Positions 1,774-12,477 of a stretch of 64,000 nt of DNA are shown here, one piece after another. Source of the stretch: Pavona decussata (Eukaryota); assembly GCA_977016875.1 (NCBI GenBank), contig CDRNST010000326.1, positions 248,001 through 312,000 of the forward strand, written 5' to 3'. The translations under genes were made by a program, and so were the position numbers. The notes beneath the pieces are model-generated. The model did no database searches and was not told the origin of the DNA. It worked only from the letters and a program-made list of their open reading frames with translations. Numbering within the stretch: the stretch's first letter is position 1; each line of letters begins with the position of its first letter.

Positions 1774-1803
1774 GTGACCTCTCACGCGAAAACGTGCACT
1801 AAC

Positions 1804-2140
1804 GCTTATCCGTTAAATGGATGAAACCGTTTGTTATCCGTTTCCTATCCGTTTAAACGCCTCACGAAAACCGTTTTAAACATTAGCGAATCCGTTTAAC
1901 GTTAACCTAACCGTTTGTAAAATTTTTGCATCCGTTAAAACGGCAAGAACTATCCGTTAATAAAAATTGTAGCATCCGTTTAAACGGGAAGAGGTATCCG
2001 TTAAAAAAATCTTGGCATCTGTTCAAACGTCAAAGCTATCCGTTTAACAACATAGTATCCATTAAAAGGGCGAGAACAGTGTGTTAATAAACAACGTTTT
2101 GATTGCCACCGTTAAAATGGCAAGCACTCTCCGTTGGAGC
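1804..2140. repeat. Left subterminal array of (T/A)(T/A)CCGTTNNAAC motifs
   Basis: About 15 copies of ATCCGTT/ACCGTT, often semi-palindromic (CCGTTAAAACGG, CCGTTTAAACGG). Confidence 0.8.
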
Positions 2141-2944
2141 GAACAGCAGAGAAAAATCGAACGGAAGGTGCAAAGGAGGCGTTTGAGTGGCCACAGAAAT
2201 TATTTGTAATGATGGTCCGATGACTGAGGAGATGTAACAACTGATGAGCATTAAACAACAGCCAGCCAACCTATATTTTGATTAACACTATAAACATTTG
2301 GCTCGACCGGACCGACTGAAAAAAAATGAAATGAATTCGCTTCCTCGCCGTGTTTGTCGCGTTTTGTTTTGGTCTAGTTTGTTTTTAAAAATAATCTATA
2401 AGCCTCCCTAACTATTCCTTCGTTTAAGGGTTTTAATCGCATCGAGATCAAAGTGCATGGCTTTTTAATTTGCAGTGTCCAACTAAATGTAAACAAAACC
2501 GCATAAGAATTATTAATTACAAATATATTTGTCCCTGTTTGCGTGACATGAATTTAGGTCAACTCATATGCGTAATGTGCCCCTTTGTGTACATTATCTT
2601 TTGCACTGCCATCTAAAAGCAAACATACCTGAGTATTTTCCATGATCTGTCACCAGGCTTACATGTAATTCTTTACGTGGAATGCATTACGATAGCAACA
2701 ACAAGTACCGAAACCATTTCACATGTTTATCTGAATTGCACGTGACCAGTAACACGATACATAACTAGCATCAGAGAGAGCGAGATCTGGGTTCGAGATT
2801 ACACGATCCATTTACCTTTTTTGATCCCAATCGGTTCACGATTCGGTGGGAGAGCCCAACAATAAACGCGTTGTCTTGGTAACTACTTAGGTTTTACATT
2901 ATATGGATGTAATCTTCTAGCTCATAATTCGAAAATTCGACAAA

Positions 2945-4696
2945 ATGGAGGAATCAACACGCGAGGTAAATTGCGATCAGGCTGAAAGTCAGGAAGTTGT
3001 AGCAAGAGTTAAAAAGTTTCTTCAGGACGGATGCGGATGTTCCCGAGGCTGCAACGGTGGGCAGTGCTCTGACCAATTTTCCAAGGAATCCATACTTTCA
3101 AATTTATACAGCTGCCTTGAACTCTCACATACAGAGCTCGACTTGGTCATTCTGGCAATTATACAAGCATTTACGAGTATCAAACCATCTGGAGAAAAAA
3201 GGAAGCGAAGTCCAAGATGCAACTTCCTGTACCAGTCGTGAACAATCTGCAAGGATATGATTTTGAACCTGTACGGAATCAGCTACTCGCGGTTTCGAAG
3301 GTTAAAAGAGCATTATGAAAATCACGGCATTTCTCAAAGGACCCACGGCAATAGCAAGAGACTGCCTCACAACACTATACAACAAGCCGTGACTGAGGAT
3401 GTGAAGGCTTTCCTGAACAATTACGTCGAGGAAAACGCTGTCTTACTTCCTGGCAGGATCCCTGGGTATAAAAGCGATGACATTAAACTTTTGTCATCGA
3501 GTGAAACAAAAATGAGCGTGTGGCGCGCTTTCCAAAGAGCATGCAAAGAAACAGATAAACAAGCGGTATGCTACACCAAATTTATTGAGTTATGGCAGCA
3601 ATTTCACCCAAACGTTGTTGTTGCTAAACCAATGACTGACCTTTGTTTCACTTGTCAGCAAAACACTTCGAAGCTTCTCCGATCCACCAATCTGCCTGAC
3701 AGGGAAAAGTCCGATTGCGTTCAAGCTCAGCAAGAACATTTGAACTCTGTGCAAAAGGAAAGAGAACTGTATCGGAAGGTCTGCGAGGAAGCGAAAAGCA
3801 ACTTTGAAATGGTGGAGGACACAATTGAGCTGGATAAACGACATGAGACGTGCTCACTGGACACCACAATTCACTATTCTTTTGACTTTGCGCAACAGGT
3901 ACACATCCCGAGCAATCCAATGCAACCAGGACCAATATACTTTAAAACTCCACGCAAATGTGGTATTTTTGGAGTCATGTGTGAGGCGATACCTCGCCAA
4001 GTGAACTATCTCATCGATGAAGCAAGTGACGTTGGTAAAGGGGCTAATACTACCATTAGTTACGTACATCATTATTTTGAAAATCATGGACTAGGTGAAA
4101 CTTGTGTTCACCTGCAGGCCGACAACTGCTCAGGACAAAACAAAAACAATTATTTTATTTGGTATCTGGCATGGAGAACAATTAATCAGCTGCATCATTC
4201 TATTAACTACTCGTTTTTGATTGCTGGTCACACGAAGTTTGGTCCAGACCGCTGCTTCGGAATAATCAAACGATCTTACAAAGTGAACTTTATATCGTCG
4301 ATATATGAATTAGCGAGGATGGTGGACTCGTCGAGCACTATTGGAACCAACAAAGCTCATCTTGTGGGAACACACAACGGAAGAGTTATTGTCCGGGCAT
4401 ACAAGTGGGCATCATTTCTTGAACAGTACTTCAACAAGATACCAAACATTAAAAAGTACCAACACTTCCGATTCACTAAAGATGAGCCTGGCAAAGTGTA
4501 TTTCAAAGAGAGTAGCTCATCTCCTGAACAATCCCAGATGCTCCTGAAGAACCGTGCAATCCTGCCTCCTGCCACACTGCTTCCACCCGAACTTCATCCG
4601 GATGGACTGAGCCAAGAAAGAAGGCAGTATCTTTATCGCGAGATCAGACCATTCTGCAAGCCGGGAACGGAAGATCTTGTCGCTCCAACGCCATGA
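2945..4696 (+). pseudogene. Sola1 DDD transposase (~583 codons) with one in-frame stop
   Basis: ORFs 2945-3241 and 3257-4696 share a frame and are separated by TGA 3239-3241. Motifs SFDFAQ, IYFK, DNCSGQNKN, GHTKFGPDRCFG; Cys-rich N-terminus. Confidence 0.85.
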
Positions 4697-5147
4697 ACTG
4701 TAATTCAAGTTTTCATCGTATTTGTAATACATGTAAAATTTTCAATGAATTTGTGATCAACTTTGCGCAATTTCCAATTTTTCTTGTTTTCTTGTGATAA
4801 TTATGGGGCAAGTTGAGGTTCATTGTTACAATTTTCACTTGGGGCAAGTATAAAATACCACGTATAGTTTTACAGTTTTATTAATGTACATTTACTTAGG
4901 ATAATTAGTAAAAGTAAATAAAAAAACGATGGACCAAAGAAAAATTCCGTTTTTTTTTTTTTTTTCTTACTTCAAAAAGGGACGAGGAAGAAATAGTCTG
5001 TCGGTTTAAAAAATATATCTTTAGTTCTTTTTGGTGTAGTAATCGTCACAGTTTATTTTAGGCGCCGTAAACTTTTAATTATTTAGTTCTGCAAGGCAAA
5101 GTTCTTTCCGCAAACGCCAGCGAGTCCAGAATTAATAGAATGTACCT

Positions 5148-5698
5148 ATGAGCTTTGCCCCGCCAAAAGATGATTCTCTTGTCGTCGTTCAAGATCTGCC
5201 GCATGACCTGTCAACAATTGACGTGGAGGCTTTTGCAAGTCTGGGTACCGGTGTCGCTGCCAGTCCTTTACCTTTGGCCAACACCACCGGTCCATTGTCC
5301 ACACCAGACAGTCCCGCTACACCTGCACCATATGCTGTAAACACCGCCGATCCAGTGTCTACACCTGTCGGCGTAGACCTTATCCGAGGCTGTGTCACCC
5401 CACGGAAAGTGCAGGGCATCCAGAAAGCTTTGGAAAAGGAACAAGTGCGGCACAAGTGTGCACTCAAGCTACTTCCATTTTTTTCACGAAGAAAGAGCTA
5501 ACTAAAAGCAACACGGATGGATCTCACGGGAAAGAACGTTTAGATGCCAATAAACTAAATTCGCTTAAAGTGCTAATTTTCAGTAAGTTCCCCGTTGACT
5601 GTCCAGTTGAAAAGGAGAAACTGTGGCGAAATATTAAGGGCAGGATCAATTCAAAGTGTCGGGCTAAAAAGTTTGCTTACACGGGGAGGGAAGATTAA
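5148..5698 (+). pseudogene. BEN-domain protein carried inside the Sola1 element (frameshift ~5480)
   Basis: Pro/Thr-rich linker, then ALKLLPFF/FTKKELTKSNTDGSHGKERLDANKLNSLKVLIFSKFP..WRNIKGRINSKCR, the BEN pattern. Frameshift in a T-run. Confidence 0.75.
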
Positions 5699-6829
5699 AA
5701 AGAAGTGATGTAACGGAAATTATGTAACCATTGATGTTAATTCAAGGGCGTGCTAGTACTGTAGTTTTTAATCAACTGTTTGTAAATAAAGTAAGAAGAC
5801 TACTGAAAAATGACTCGTTTTCTGCGTAGGGTGCTGTTGTTGAGGTCTGGGTTACTGGATCAGATAAATTAATTTATATTCAGAGAGATCTTTATTTATC
5901 CAGTCCAATTACAGTTTCATGGCACGATATTTCTATCACTATTTGGGAAATCATATACAAAGTCTTAAGCGAGTCTCGGTACGGGTGTCAACGGCTCAAA
6001 ATTCCAAATAGACGTAATCGACATCAAAACAATCCATATGACAAAAAAGCATGTGCATAATTCTCTGTAAAGTATGTAAGCATCGGAGTATTATAACTTT
6101 CCTTCATGCTTCAGACAAGTGAATGCCGCTGGTTAAAATGAGAAGGAAAAGGAAACGCGACTAGGTTGATAAAACCAATTTTCATTAAAATGCTAGCGGC
6201 AGATGTCTGGGACTCGGGGACATGTAGTCCAAGAATCCCTAGAGGATTGCTAGTGTCAGGAAACACCGTAGAACTTCGGAATAGTGTTTCTTTTTAGATT
6301 CCTACTCTCTTGTAGATGCCACGGTGATACAAATACAACTTTTTACGCGCAGATTGGCTGTTTTTATAAAACTGATTGTCTTGCGTTACTTGTCACGTGT
6401 TTTGAAACTCGTATGCAAATTTTCGCAAGGTTGTTACGTGCAATATTCCACGCGATGATTTGCACTATCACTTGTTTCTCTTTCACCTGTAAATTCATTT
6501 TCTCACTAGTAAAATTAACAGTTTTAAACTTTGTGCGTTTCGCGTCTTGAAGTGTTCTTTGTTTATATCAACGAGTATCCATTGGAAACCTTCCGGGGTG
6601 ATGAATTATTTGATGCTGGGATGCCTGCGATCTTGCAGACATAATTATTCATTCATCCGATCGTGCTTTGTTTTTGTGTTACTGTTCCGGCCATGACAAA
6701 CTTTTCAACCGCAAGTAGTAACTTGTTTGCTGTAAGATGTTATGATAATACGTAGCTTTTGGCCAATTCGTTTTTCTAAGCCGATTAAAAGCGCTACCTC
6801 GTTGGAAGGTTTAGTAGATTTCGCTAAAC

Positions 6830-7172
6830 ATACCGTTCTATCTTGAGTAATATCCATTCGCCCATTTCGCGTTAAATAGTTCAATCTATCCGTTCAAACG
6901 TTTTCGCTAACCATTCAAACAGTTCAACGTATCCATTCGCAGATTTTCGCTAACAGTAAACGCTTCAATCTATCCGTTCGAAAATTTTCTCTAACCGTTT
7001 TGACGCTTCAATCTATCCGTTCAAAAATTTTCGCTGACCGTTCGAACGGTTTTTACAAGCCGTTTGCGGATATTCATTACCCGTTTAAACGTTCTGTGAA
7101 ACCGTTTTAACGCTTTCAAAAGGCGTTTTCTATCCGTTTACTATCCGTTCGTTTTCACCCATTTAACGGATA
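6830..7172. repeat. Right subterminal CCGTT motif array with ~40-bp tandem units
   Basis: Repeated TTCAATCTATCCGTTC..AATTTTCGCTAACCGTT units. Confidence 0.8.
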
Positions 7173-7359
7173 AGCGTTAGTGTACGTTTTTGCGTGAGAG
7201 GTCACATTTGCTAAATTTTTTGTAATAACAAGAGATGATACTGTTTGCTTTTAAAAGTGATCACCATGATTGAACATATTAGGTTAGTCATGATGGTTAG
7301 GCCAGAGTCCAGTGCAGCCTTAACTATTTCATTTGTACATTATAAGCCCCAGCATCAAT

Positions 7360-8627: not shown

Positions 8628-9729
8628 ATGCCTCGCGTATCAGCTAGACTTCAAGGTAAACACTCTCAGAGTGAGGTGGTGAATAGAGCTGCACCCAAAC
8701 GGTGCCGGCAAAATGAGACACTGGGTCGACCACACAGCACTAATATTGCAATTAGCACCAGCGACCTTCCGTCAACGTCATTTACCGATGACATGATTTC
8801 ACGCTTGGCTGATGCCGTCACGCAACGCCTTCGACAAGAGCAGTCCCTGCCTTCGTCATCAACACCTATGTCGACTAATACCTTTGTCAGGGAGATACCT
8901 GCAGCATCTCCTTCCATTCCTCCATGTCCGCCAAGTACTTCCATTTCCAGTTTGGAGAGTGCCGTGCAATCTTCAGTTGTGGCCGCCCAACCAGCATTCT
9001 AACCAGGTGAGCCGTCTGATCCTTTCATCTCCTCGAGTCTGTCTATTGACGCTCGCGTCTCTGAAAGGTCCGTACCAAAATCTGGAACCACGAATATGTT
9101 GACTTTGGTTCCCTTCTCGTTAAGCCGGCTACGCAGAGTCGTTATCAAGTAACTGTTAGTAGCGCTGAATCGGGTCAGCCTCCTTCGCTTTGTTTGGAAC
9201 CGGCCAAGAAACCACGGAAGATTCTTCTATTGAATCCTGGTTGAGCGCTTTTCATGTATTTGTTGGGGTTTATACTATGAAATACCCCACTGAGTCTCAA
9301 GCTCTTGTGAAATATGGTTCCATTATTCATGACTTGGCAGCCAGGGATCACAATTGGCGCTTCTATAACGAGAATTTTCAGTTTATTCGTCAGTCCCATG
9401 TTTCTTCACTCCCGTGGGGCACGATTCATAGTGAGTTGTGGCTTCGATCGCATTCTAGCACCTCAGCCAGCAAATCACCCACATTCGGGATTACATCGGG
9501 TCTTAGAGGGAAGGCCGATCGTGGAATTCCCTTTGGTTTTTGCTTCAAATTTCATCGTGGTTTGGTTTGCTCCGGCAGCAATTTCAGACATACCTGCTTT
9601 AAGTGTAACGGTGATCACGTAGGCACAACTCGTAATTTTCGTGCCTCAGGGAGTACCTCAAGCCAGCCCGCCAACAAACAACCCCTGTCTGCCAAAGCAA
9701 AACCTACCAACCCAAGTTCGAGCCGATAG
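8628..9729 (+). pseudogene. DIRS/Ngaro Gag-like ORF1 (frameshifted)
   Basis: SIESWLSAFHVF...Y...I..LA....W..Y.E.FR; C-terminal CFKFHRG..C...FRHTCFKCNGDH zinc motif. Confidence 0.8.
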
Positions 9730-10501
9730 ATTCATTTTTCTTCTTGACGGGTATGACCATTCGACTGTCGTGTTCTTAAGGTTTGGTTTTACTGACGGGT
9801 TTCCAATTCATTTCAAGGGCGATTTTACTGCCATTGATTCTAAAAATTTGGCTTCGGCCATCCAACAGCCCTCTGTCGTTGAGGCAAAGCTTGTTAAAGA
9901 AATAGAGGCCGGCAGAATAGCAGGTCCTTTTTTAGCTCCTCCGTTTCCACAATTTCGCGTTTCCCCTCTCGGGGTTGTTCCAAAGAAAGTCCCCGGTGAA
10001 TTTAGATTAATTCACCATTTGTCCTACCCCAAGGGATTGTCCGTCAACGACGGCATTCCCAATGAATATACCTCAGTTTCCTACGCTAATATCGAGGATG
10101 CTATTCGATTCATTAAAAAAGCAGGTCCTGGTTGTTTTCTTGCAAAAACGGACGTACAAAGTGCTTTTCGCATAATACCGATTAACCCTAAAGATTACCA
10201 CCTACTCGGAATACGTTGGAATGGCCTTTATTTCTATGACCGTTGTATGCCTATAGGTTGTTCCAGTTCCTGTCGGACATTCGAAACCTTGAGCATGGCA
10301 GTTGAATGGATTGCCCGTACTAAGATGAATATAGACTTTATCCTGCATCTTTTAGACGATTTTCTTATCATAGCTCCCTCTTATGAGTCCTGTTCACAAC
10401 AACTGGACTTATTTCTGCGCCTGTGTTCTTATTTGGGCATCCCCATGGCACCGCAAAAAACAGTTGGTCCATCGACCACTTTATCTTTTGTAGGTATTGA
10501 A
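9641..10501 (+). pseudogene. DIRS/Ngaro reverse transcriptase, 5' part
   Basis: SPLGVVPKK, FRLIHHLS, KTDVQSAFRIIP, MPIGCSSSC, HLLDDFL. Interrupted at FVGIE. Confidence 0.92.
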
Positions 10502-11614
10502 TATTGAATTTGGGCATCATCAGAGTGAAAGAGAACATAATTCCTAACTGCACATCTAGTGGAAGCGAGGTGAAAGCTTGTCTTCACTTACGACACGCTT
10601 ACATTTAATTTCAATAAGGAAATACTTACTGTTTAACGACTGAATGACTCTCTGCCGCAGCTCAGTCCTTCCTTTAACACACTTACAAGCAAAAGAGGAA
10701 TGCCCACAACTGGATGTCTGCTTTTCTTTCAAACTTGATACGAGTGTTGCCACCTATTATACCAACCACAGCGAGATCCCTTCTGCCGGAAAAGGTTTTA
10801 AATGAACTAAAATGCTTGCAGTGAGAAAATCTCACATACGGAAGTTTTTTAATTATTACTTTCTTTTTTAGTTTTCGCCTGGTTTTTGTTTGGAAATGCC
10901 AAGCGAATTAAGCGTCAGGAAATTTTTGCTATGCCATGGCAATGCTTTCGATCATACAGAAAGAAAAGGTAGTAGAGGCACAGTACTAGCTGGTACTATG
11001 ATTGTGTTAAAATTGCTCAACTGCTTTAAGGATTTCATCGACACGGACATTAACAGAAGAGGCCCTAGTTGTGTTCGACCACTTGTGATTTCCGGCCAAA
11101 TCAAAATCTTTTCTTCAGTTAAATTTTGCAGATCTCCTAAGATATTGTGTTACTAAGCCGGTCTAAAACATGAAAAAAAAGTTTTTCTCTTCGGTTACTC
11201 ATTACCGAAGGTTATAGTCCGTCCACTGCGCTACGCGTAAAATATTGGAAATTACATAATTTTTTTGGAAGTTAGGGGAAAAAGATATCCTTATGGAATT
11301 ATCTTATACCTTCAATGAGATGTTTTTACGTATGTGTTACAACCAGGAGCTACGCAGTGACCAGCAACAAACGTCATCGTCAATTTAACCAAATCTCGGA
11401 ACGTATGGGAAGACAAATAAGGATAAAGAATGAAGAAAGACTAATAATTTCTCACTCAGTTAGACTGATGAGCCTACTTGTAAAATCTGCTTGGACTCAC
11501 AAGTAGGTCTGCAAAGAATCAGCGGTTGATTCACGGGTTCATGTCAATGCTGCACATTTGCTTCAACATGCGTTTGATAACGTCGTTCGACGTAACTACC
11601 GATTGGCCTCAATC

Positions 11615-12477
11615 CGCAAAAATTAGTTCCCGCAGAAAAAAACACCCGCAAAATAAAACGCCGCAAAAATTAACTCCCTTCAGTCAAATTTAAAACTCCG
11701 CTTTTAATAGACCTATGCCACTGAAGCGATATACATTGGACTTAAACAAGAACAATAACATGATTTTTCATTGGAAAAAGCAACTAGAGCTGTCAAGCGT
11801 AAAGCAATTCAGTACATTAGATTGTCACGAATGGGTCTAAAGGAACGGACAGACTTGAATTGTGCAGCAGACCAACCATGTTCTAGTGGCGCATCTGCGG
11901 CAGCCTGCACAGAAGTGTAGAAGTTCAACTGAACAAGAGTGTTATTATTATCGACTGAGTCTGTCTTATTGCGTTACAATAGGGCATAGGGGGCATAGTT
12001 AGCAGGCCGCTCCCAGTTAGGTCTCAAAGTTGTATACTAGCTGAAAGACCCTCTGTAGTGCCTAGAAAGGTTTCAGCAACGGTAATTCAAAAATTCATAC
12101 TGCTTTCTTATAAAATTTTATACGGTAATACCGGTTGTGGTAAACCATATTAACGAAACAGTGTTTGGTAGTGCATGGTAGGAGTAGGCTTTTTATGTTG
12201 TTGTTGTTCTTTCCCTTTACACACTAAGGTATTATGTGATATGTCTCCAATATGTAACTAGAACTGAGACTCAATTGGGCGTCCAATAAAAGTTGAAAAT
12301 ATTCAGGTTTCTTCCACTTAAATAATTATTCTGCTGCTTGAACCAGAGCATCGCAAAAATTAGTTTCCACTAAAAATTTCAGTCTTCTCGAAACGCCAAA
12401 ATTTGTTCCCGCAAAACACAAAAAATTGCCAATCCGCAAAATATAAAACTCTCGCAAAATTTTCGTGCTACACGGTA
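11615..12477. repeat. MITE remnant with CCGCAAAA motif clusters, ending ...CTACACGGTA
   Basis: Multiple (C)CGCAAAA(TT) motifs at 11615-11670 and 12352-12462. Left terminus not found. Confidence 0.4.

Follow-up and report, generated by a model that had tools for sequence, protein, structure and literature searches.

The 64,000-nucleotide stretch of Pavona decussata DNA analysed here (GCA_977016875.1, contig CDRNST010000326.1, positions 248,001 to 312,000 of the forward strand; hereafter the window, with positions counted from its first letter) contains a DNA transposon of the cut-and-paste type, 5,432 bp in length (1774-7205), which was delimited by direct reading and a repeat scan. It carries a Sola1-like transposase gene (2945-4696) and, downstream of it, an open reading frame (ORF) coding for a BEN domain (5456-5695), both on the plus strand, as had been noted in an initial annotation made from the sequence of the window. 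That annotation described the element as a candidate two-component mobile system with BEN as a cargo gene. The question raised by this locus is whether the BEN gene is a regular component of such elements or a single acquisition, and what its product might do. Co-location, purifying selection and spliced expression lend strong support to the two-component character. The BEN gene does lie within the element, but it is not cargo of this particular copy: it is a lineage-wide second gene of these coral elements.

Pairing of the transposase and BEN genes

A BEN match was found within 15 kb at 21 of the 28 related transposase loci of this genome (the window copy plus 27 others), against a chance expectation of 0.06; a protein search of the genome with an 80-aa BEN piece as a query returned 42 matches. 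Ten elements were bounded by both ends and matching 4-bp duplications, and nine of these hold both genes. These are: the window copy (duplication ATTT), C49:3759810-3769767 (ATAT), C6:4512431-4522493 (ATTT), C194:1267434-1275931 (AACT), C96:179556-186538 (AAAT), C78:2967201-2976874 (ATTT), C382:2327193-2340845 (AATT), L060:7022-19601 (an ENA contig; AAAT), with a transposase fragment and BEN, and L061:6303-19853 (ENA; AATT), with a transposase of 49% identity and a split BEN-like ORF downstream. The tenth, L059:9246-11543 (ENA ERZ25067557; ATTT), is 2.3 kb long and has perfect Sola-type terminal repeats; of the two genes it has only BEN, with exon 2 and the last exon (185 aa, intact; P0023), and is therefore a BEN-only, non-autonomous derivative. 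Overall, the duplications were ATTT (four elements), AAAT and AATT (two each), ATAT and AACT, and nearly all single ends were also flanked by AWWT. Terminal repeats of the relatives are at least 47 nt long, and a terminus of the window type recurs at at least 20 other element ends.

The element at C78 has three more copies of 94-99.9% identity, and a comparison of the copies on C2 (2456061 onward) and C250 showed 98.9% identity through a stretch of more than 10 kb spanning both genes. Both genes are intact in C96, C49 and the C78 family, and the BEN gene was located inside the mobile unit in every subfamily examined. As both genes lie within bounded elements, several of them intact, BEN belongs to the mobile unit itself and is no nested insertion; the expectation that it would be shared by, and intact in, other copies has been borne out. 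The pairing also extends to distant relatives. Three copies (L068-L070) share one and the same 670-aa transposase, which is 47% identical to the query, and possess a 270-aa ORF 2.8 kb downstream, whose product is 28-33% identical to BEN proteins (E about 1e-10) and scores below the Pfam threshold. The presence of BEN in subfamilies with transposase identities of 47-50% means that the partnership predates their split, and BEN diverges faster than the transposase across subfamilies.

The BEN protein of the C78 family retrieved 66 homologues, 52 of them with a precomputed PF10523 match, and the one named species was Porites evermanni, which together with ENA assemblies makes up the taxonomic scope of the pairing. 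In a P. evermanni copy (L058), a transposase containing stops (9544-11238) is followed on the same strand by BEN (11660-12207), and only the right end (13562) was identified. A public gene model of this locus, P0027 (L058:10001-12219), fuses the BEN exon to an internal segment of the transposase ORF; the copy is decayed, and the fusion is probably an artefact of annotation. Two long members of the group (12-13.6 kb) contain extra ORFs (in L061:16206-18704 and L060:11205-19600) with DUF8422, HTH_animal, DUF6589 and helicase pieces, which are probably nested insertions. Four other BEN matches with identical scores (C45:1191011, C157:895266, C241:752463 and C273:3169889; 40% identity, 266-aa open frames) look like another BEN-carrying repeated family.

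The transposase itself has a wider distribution. As a query it yielded 912 homologues, with DUF7869 in all 120 of those listed; Oculina, Montipora and Acropora are named among the matches listed, and related atlas clusters come from molluscs, arthropods and rotifers. No literature on the DUF7869 family was found. Across 17 homologues, D308 and D387 were conserved in at least 90% and D429 was invariant, a pattern compatible with, though not proof of, a DDD transposase.

Structure, expression and descent of the BEN gene

The exon structure of the BEN gene was recognized with the help of P0008 (L067), a natural spliced relative. This 249-aa database protein, derived from a 1,147-nt Logan contig, has an N-terminal extension not seen in the genomic ORFs. 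Its exons were searched one by one, and P0008 itself was used as the joined form. The N-terminal part matches two small upstream exons, which are present in the C78 family, C194, C6, C49, C96, C382, C2/C250, L059 and L060.

For the transcript analysis, contigs of four public runs were placed on the BEN side of the C78 element (L034). A 1,140-nt contig of run X14 aligned in three blocks (1560-2010, 2234-2330 and 2467-2741), and the joints 2010>2234 (also present in run X2) and 2330>2467 are CT..AC on the plus strand, i.e. GT..AG on the strand of the BEN gene. The 5' part of the contig resumes 842 bp further upstream, across another GT..AG intron. Given three GT..AG introns, the exons number at least four, and the gene has a start region of its own. 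The runs were only guessed to be RNA, but a contig from which three canonical introns are missing can hardly be anything else. The BEN gene of the intact four-copy C78 family is thus transcribed in the host as a spliced four-exon mRNA, separate from the transposase.

The encoded protein (approximately 230-250 aa) has a coiled-coil-like helix pair at its N-terminus and a BEN domain at its C-terminus (P0008 against PF10523: 38.2 bits, E 1.7e-9); between them lie an acidic DLxTID motif and a disordered Pro/Thr/Ser linker. The AF2 model of P0008 places the long helices at residues 10-33 and 37-84 and a third, shorter one over the DLxTID motif, which is conserved; residues 105-137 make up the disordered linker, and the BEN domain is predicted at 142-248, with pLDDT above 90. 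The best Foldseek matches of this model were DNA-bound BEN domains, namely BANP (rmsd 1.8 A, 28% identity), followed by BEND3, Insv, Elba1, NACC1 and BEND6. The BEN family profile also matched BANP (E 3.8e-8), with the equivalent of Arg316 kept. In BANP, Loop 1 and helix alpha5 contact DNA, and Ser313 and Arg316 read bases (PMC10206803). The most conserved stretches of the coral proteins are Loop 1 (SNTDGxHxK) and helix alpha5 (W..IK.KIN.(R/K)CR), while the position of BANP Ser313 varies among subfamilies, being Ser in the window and C2 subfamilies and Ala or Asp in the others.

Between subfamilies, BEN shows nonsynonymous divergence (dN) of 0.15-0.5 with saturated synonymous divergence (dS; 108 conserved codons). 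The two unsaturated pairs gave dN/dS ratios of 0.19 (C194 and P. evermanni) and 0.11 (C49 and L059), values below the limit of 1 named in the initial annotation, and BEN is therefore under purifying selection. The transposase tree contains three supported clades. The BEN tree (110 columns) resolved only one, C194 with P. evermanni, and none of the three transposase clades was rejected by the BEN data (approximately unbiased (AU) test, p 0.26, 0.23 and 0.34), which is compatible with co-descent of the two genes.

Element ends and the probable role of the BEN protein

The repeat scan of the window revealed an inverted pair of 57 nt (1773-1829 and 7150-7206) with 93% complementarity. Its outermost base pair is formed by the inner base of the ATTT duplication, so that the terminal inverted repeats proper are 56 nt long (1774-1829, plus strand, beginning with GTGACC, and 7150-7205, minus strand). 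The target-site duplication was read directly at 1770-1773, with the same four bases beyond the right end at 7206-7209. Both the repeats and the duplication are as initially described, and so are the CCGTT arrays: the two terminal 500-bp stretches together contain 30 copies of CCGTT or AACGG vs 7 in the 4.4-kb interior, and CCGTT alone is found 14 times in the first and 11 times in the last 500 bp. The left subterminal array (1830-2140, plus strand; repeat family D2) consists of ATCCGTT-type motifs with a period of approximately 43-44 bp, and the right one (6850-7149; repeat families D1 and D3) of (T)ATCCGTT and TAACCGTT motifs spaced by 21-43 bp on the same strand as in the left array. Generally, the subterminal motifs reach 19-33 per kb at the ends vs 0.8-2 per kb inside, and their core, (T)ATCCGTTA, is common to six subfamilies, with spacings of about 21 and 43 bp.

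Most CCGTT motifs of the two ends share one strand, in direct and not inverted orientation (window 1774-2273 and 6706-7205, C49, C194, C96, C6 and C78), which makes the ends asymmetric. The strand of the motifs in C78 is that of the BEN gene and not of the transposase. The terminal repeats of all subfamilies have a variable 9-mer (positions 7-15) between the constant flanks GTGACC and AAAACG. CTCTCACGCG, a sequence similar to the BANP site CTCTCGCG, is present in the repeat of the window and C2 subfamilies, while other subfamilies have ..CACGGG.. or other sequences. The 9-mer of the window/C2 clade, TCTCACGCG, is BANP-site-like and occurs alongside Ser at the position of BANP Ser313. The 9-mer and this residue may possibly co-vary, a weak lead given too few independent points.

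Since the BEN gene is conserved and expressed, the elements probably use a BEN helper protein. The explanation which we favour, and consider rather probable, is that the window holds a decayed copy of a Sola1-like element of stony corals, that the autonomous members of this lineage have two genes, and that the BEN protein is an accessory factor acting on the element's own DNA. The protein would oligomerise through its helices and bind the element's DNA in a sequence-specific manner, either at the subterminal motifs or in the inner portion of the terminal repeat, and would then act for the element. Most likely it would mark the ends for the transposase or bridge them, a role played in PIF/Harbinger by the Myb-like protein; alternatively, it may control transcription or chromatin of the element. 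Such binding to the element's own ends, as by the second protein of Harbinger, is a prediction.

An element-encoded regulator standing outside the transposition machinery (a repressor of transposase expression, an insulator or an anti-silencing factor) is a possible though rather unlikely alternative. Such functions have precedents: the BEN-solo factors Insv and Elba act on the chromatin of host genes, and VANC is an anti-silencing protein of VANDAL elements. The coral protein is closest in fold and sequence to host BEN transcription and chromatin factors, its coiled coil with a single BEN domain matches the BEN-solo architecture, the nearest atlas clusters include BEND5-like proteins, the transposase has putative DNA-binding modules of its own, and the 2.3-kb BEN-only element L059 exists. 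The conserved DNA-contact surface and the end motifs fit a regulator and a transposition cofactor alike, so that this reading is not separable from the latter. Splicing of the BEN exon onto transposase exons, giving a fusion or truncated isoform instead of a separate gene, is highly unlikely. It is suggested by the model P0027, in which transposase residues are joined to the BEN exon, and by the short distance (420-450 bp) between the transposase stop and the BEN exon, on the same strand, in the window copy and L058; against this, BEN lies on the opposite strand to the transposase in the C78 and C2/C250 families, the observed mRNA begins from its own upstream exons, and P0027 uses a non-canonical acceptor 10 codons inside the BEN exon, in a copy whose transposase has stops.

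It is very improbable that BEN is a passenger, i.e. a fragment of a host gene captured once or several times and useless to the element. DNA transposons do capture host fragments, the window copy has one BEN exon only, and the orientation of BEN relative to the transposase varies. A useless fragment would hardly be found across subfamilies down to 47% transposase identity, remain under strong purifying selection while synonymous sites are saturated, stand as an intact ORF beside intact transposases in young multi-copy families, and be spliced and expressed, nor does the BEN data set reject the transposase clades. The insertion of an independent BEN-bearing element into the Sola element of the window was also considered. 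The unique DNA of 4700-6850 is the only feature in favour of such an origin, which was rejected as next to impossible: the repeat scan detected no inverted repeats or duplications of its own around BEN, and nine other bounded elements have this gene between ends of the same kind. None of the outcomes named in the initial annotation as contradicting it (absence of BEN from other copies, nesting, or no HMM match) was observed.

Several observations weigh against an accessory factor of a two-gene Sola1-like element. The transposase has candidate DNA-binding parts of its own (invariant N-terminal cysteines and weak helix-turn-helix matches), and seven of the 28 transposase loci have no nearby BEN match. 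The correlation between BEN and transposase distances is weak on representatives (Mantel r 0.36, 483 of 10,000 permutations); near-identical copies inflate the r of 0.72 obtained with the full set. With the poor resolution of the BEN tree, this makes exchange of modules between subfamilies possible. The gene orientation differs between sister subfamilies (tandem in the window vs convergent in C2; tandem in C96 and C6 vs divergent in C78), which implies either internal rearrangement by repeated inversions or module exchange. The upstream coiled-coil exons were not found in the window element or L058 by the exon-by-exon search. Finally, the Sola1 label is based only on the 4-bp AWWT target duplications and is accordingly best read as Sola1-like, and insect Sola1 elements are described with one ORF, so that Sola1 chemistry as such needs no BEN.

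In its most far-reaching form, the accessory-factor explanation would make the coiled-coil BEN protein an end-recognition or end-bridging subunit of a two-protein Sola transpososome, with specificity provided by helix alpha5, and such genes could be a source or vehicle of animal BEN-solo factors and viral BEN proteins. This is a speculative and improbable proposal. Harbinger, P and hAT elements have been the sources of other host DNA-binding factors and, to our knowledge, the evolutionary origin of the BEN domain and its spread to viruses have not been explained; if the proposal is true, BEN genes of transposons would be the origin or vehicle of these proteins. Two-protein DNA transposons are few, and each is informative about end recognition or escape from silencing. 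The coral elements offer a natural system in which intact, young and expressed copies with BEN as a candidate accessory module exist next to dead ones, and their ends are a ready candidate DNA target, which makes the function of a transposon BEN protein directly testable. There is also a practical consequence, as such BEN ORFs carry the label of host "BEN domain-containing proteins" in annotated coral genomes and are joined to transposase fragments in at least one gene model.

Among known transposons, Sola1 is one of the closest. In the passages of PMC3845634 that cite Bao et al. 2009, its hallmark is given as 4-bp duplications with an AWWT preference, and AWWT-type duplications next to terminal inverted repeats were seen in the ten bounded elements. 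The coral repeats begin with G(T)GACC and include a CCGTTTA-type motif, like the insect Sola1 terminus GGACCGTTTATTT (PMC3845634), the transposase has about 580-630 aa, and the size of the window element is similar to the bivalve Sola1 mean of 5.4 kb (PMC10294476). Insect Sola1 elements (2.3-2.8 kb) have a single 630-aa ORF (PMC3845634), whereas the coral lineage adds the spliced BEN gene and long subterminal arrays.

With PIF/Harbinger the coral elements share the cut-and-paste type, two separately encoded proteins, non-autonomous derivatives, and a small second protein (BEN being predicted to bind DNA) whose gene is under selection and has been kept within the element throughout the lineage. 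They differ in DUF7869 and 4-bp AWWT duplications vs DDE_Tnp_4 and 3-bp duplications, and in a second protein of the coiled coil and BEN type vs Myb/SANT. Because this protein is not of the Myb/SANT/MADF type, the coral system is an analogue of Harbinger and not a member of it. Many short motifs within 200-400 bp inside each end are also a feature of Ac/Ds and En/Spm, where an element protein (in Ac, the transposase itself) binds them, and the Ac motif AAACGG is similar to the coral (T)ATCCGTTA/AACGG; unlike in those elements, the coral motifs are on the same strand at both ends. Like the BEN-solo factors (the BANP BEN domain, Insv, Elba1/2 and BEND5/6), the coral protein has the BEN fold with conserved Loop 1 and alpha5, a base-contacting Arg and a single C-terminal BEN domain behind a helical N-terminal region, but its gene is multi-copy inside a mobile element, and it has the acidic DLxTID motif and the Pro/Thr/Ser linker. 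VANDAL (MULE) elements with VANC and KolobokP (transposase and His-Me endonuclease) are likewise DNA transposon lineages with a conserved extra gene, which has no sequence or fold relation to coral BEN. No literature linking BEN to Sola, or to the second gene of any DNA transposon, was found. Two-gene DNA transposons as a kind are known; a partner of the BEN type is new.

The window copy

The transposase gene of the window (2945-4696, plus strand) is a single exon, recognized from its single frame, Pfam and alignment with relatives, and its larger piece matches Pfam DUF7869 with E 4.9e-21. It is broken by an in-frame TGA (3239-3241), at a codon where relatives have Q, K, L, V or R; their ORF is uninterrupted (577-584 aa). 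The homologue of the last BEN exon (5139-5698, plus strand) comprises the TID motif, the Pro/Thr/Ser-rich linker and the BEN domain, as judged by alignment with relatives, and its start was placed at 5139 because of the AG at 5137-5138 and the in-frame stops at 5133-5138. The HMM check of the BEN assignment was passed: ORF 5456-5695 matched PF10523 with 25.0 bits (E 2.3e-5; gathering score 23.2) through residues 8-71 (5477-5668), corresponding to profile positions 9-75 of 76. ORF 5148-5498, in a different frame, encodes the N-terminal part of this protein. Since the two parts form a single ORF in relatives, the reading frame of the window copy is shifted by one base, in the assembled sequence at a run of seven T (5478-5484).

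Upstream of this exon, only a short spacer is present (4697-5138), in which no match to exons 1-2 of relatives was detected in six frames; tblastn and a motif scan in six frames likewise found no coiled-coil exons in the whole window element. No DNA homologue of the spacer was found elsewhere, and a comparison with the spacer of the P. evermanni copy (L058), which is just as short, showed no similarity beyond the gene ends. No close relative of the DNA of 4700-6860 was found in the genome. A second full-length copy of the window subfamily was not found in the 602-Mb genome, the best match, on C90, being 87% over 1.7 kb; fragments were seen on C99. Due to the stop in the transposase, the missing BEN exons 0-2 and the frameshift in the last exon, the window copy can make neither protein, and its sequence is that of a dead, internally shortened deletion derivative.

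The left end of the element interrupts an ORF of 160-odd aa (1287-1802) without a Pfam match, the insertion being situated six bases ahead of its stop codon. Without the insertion, this ORF would stop at a TAA immediately past the ATTT site.

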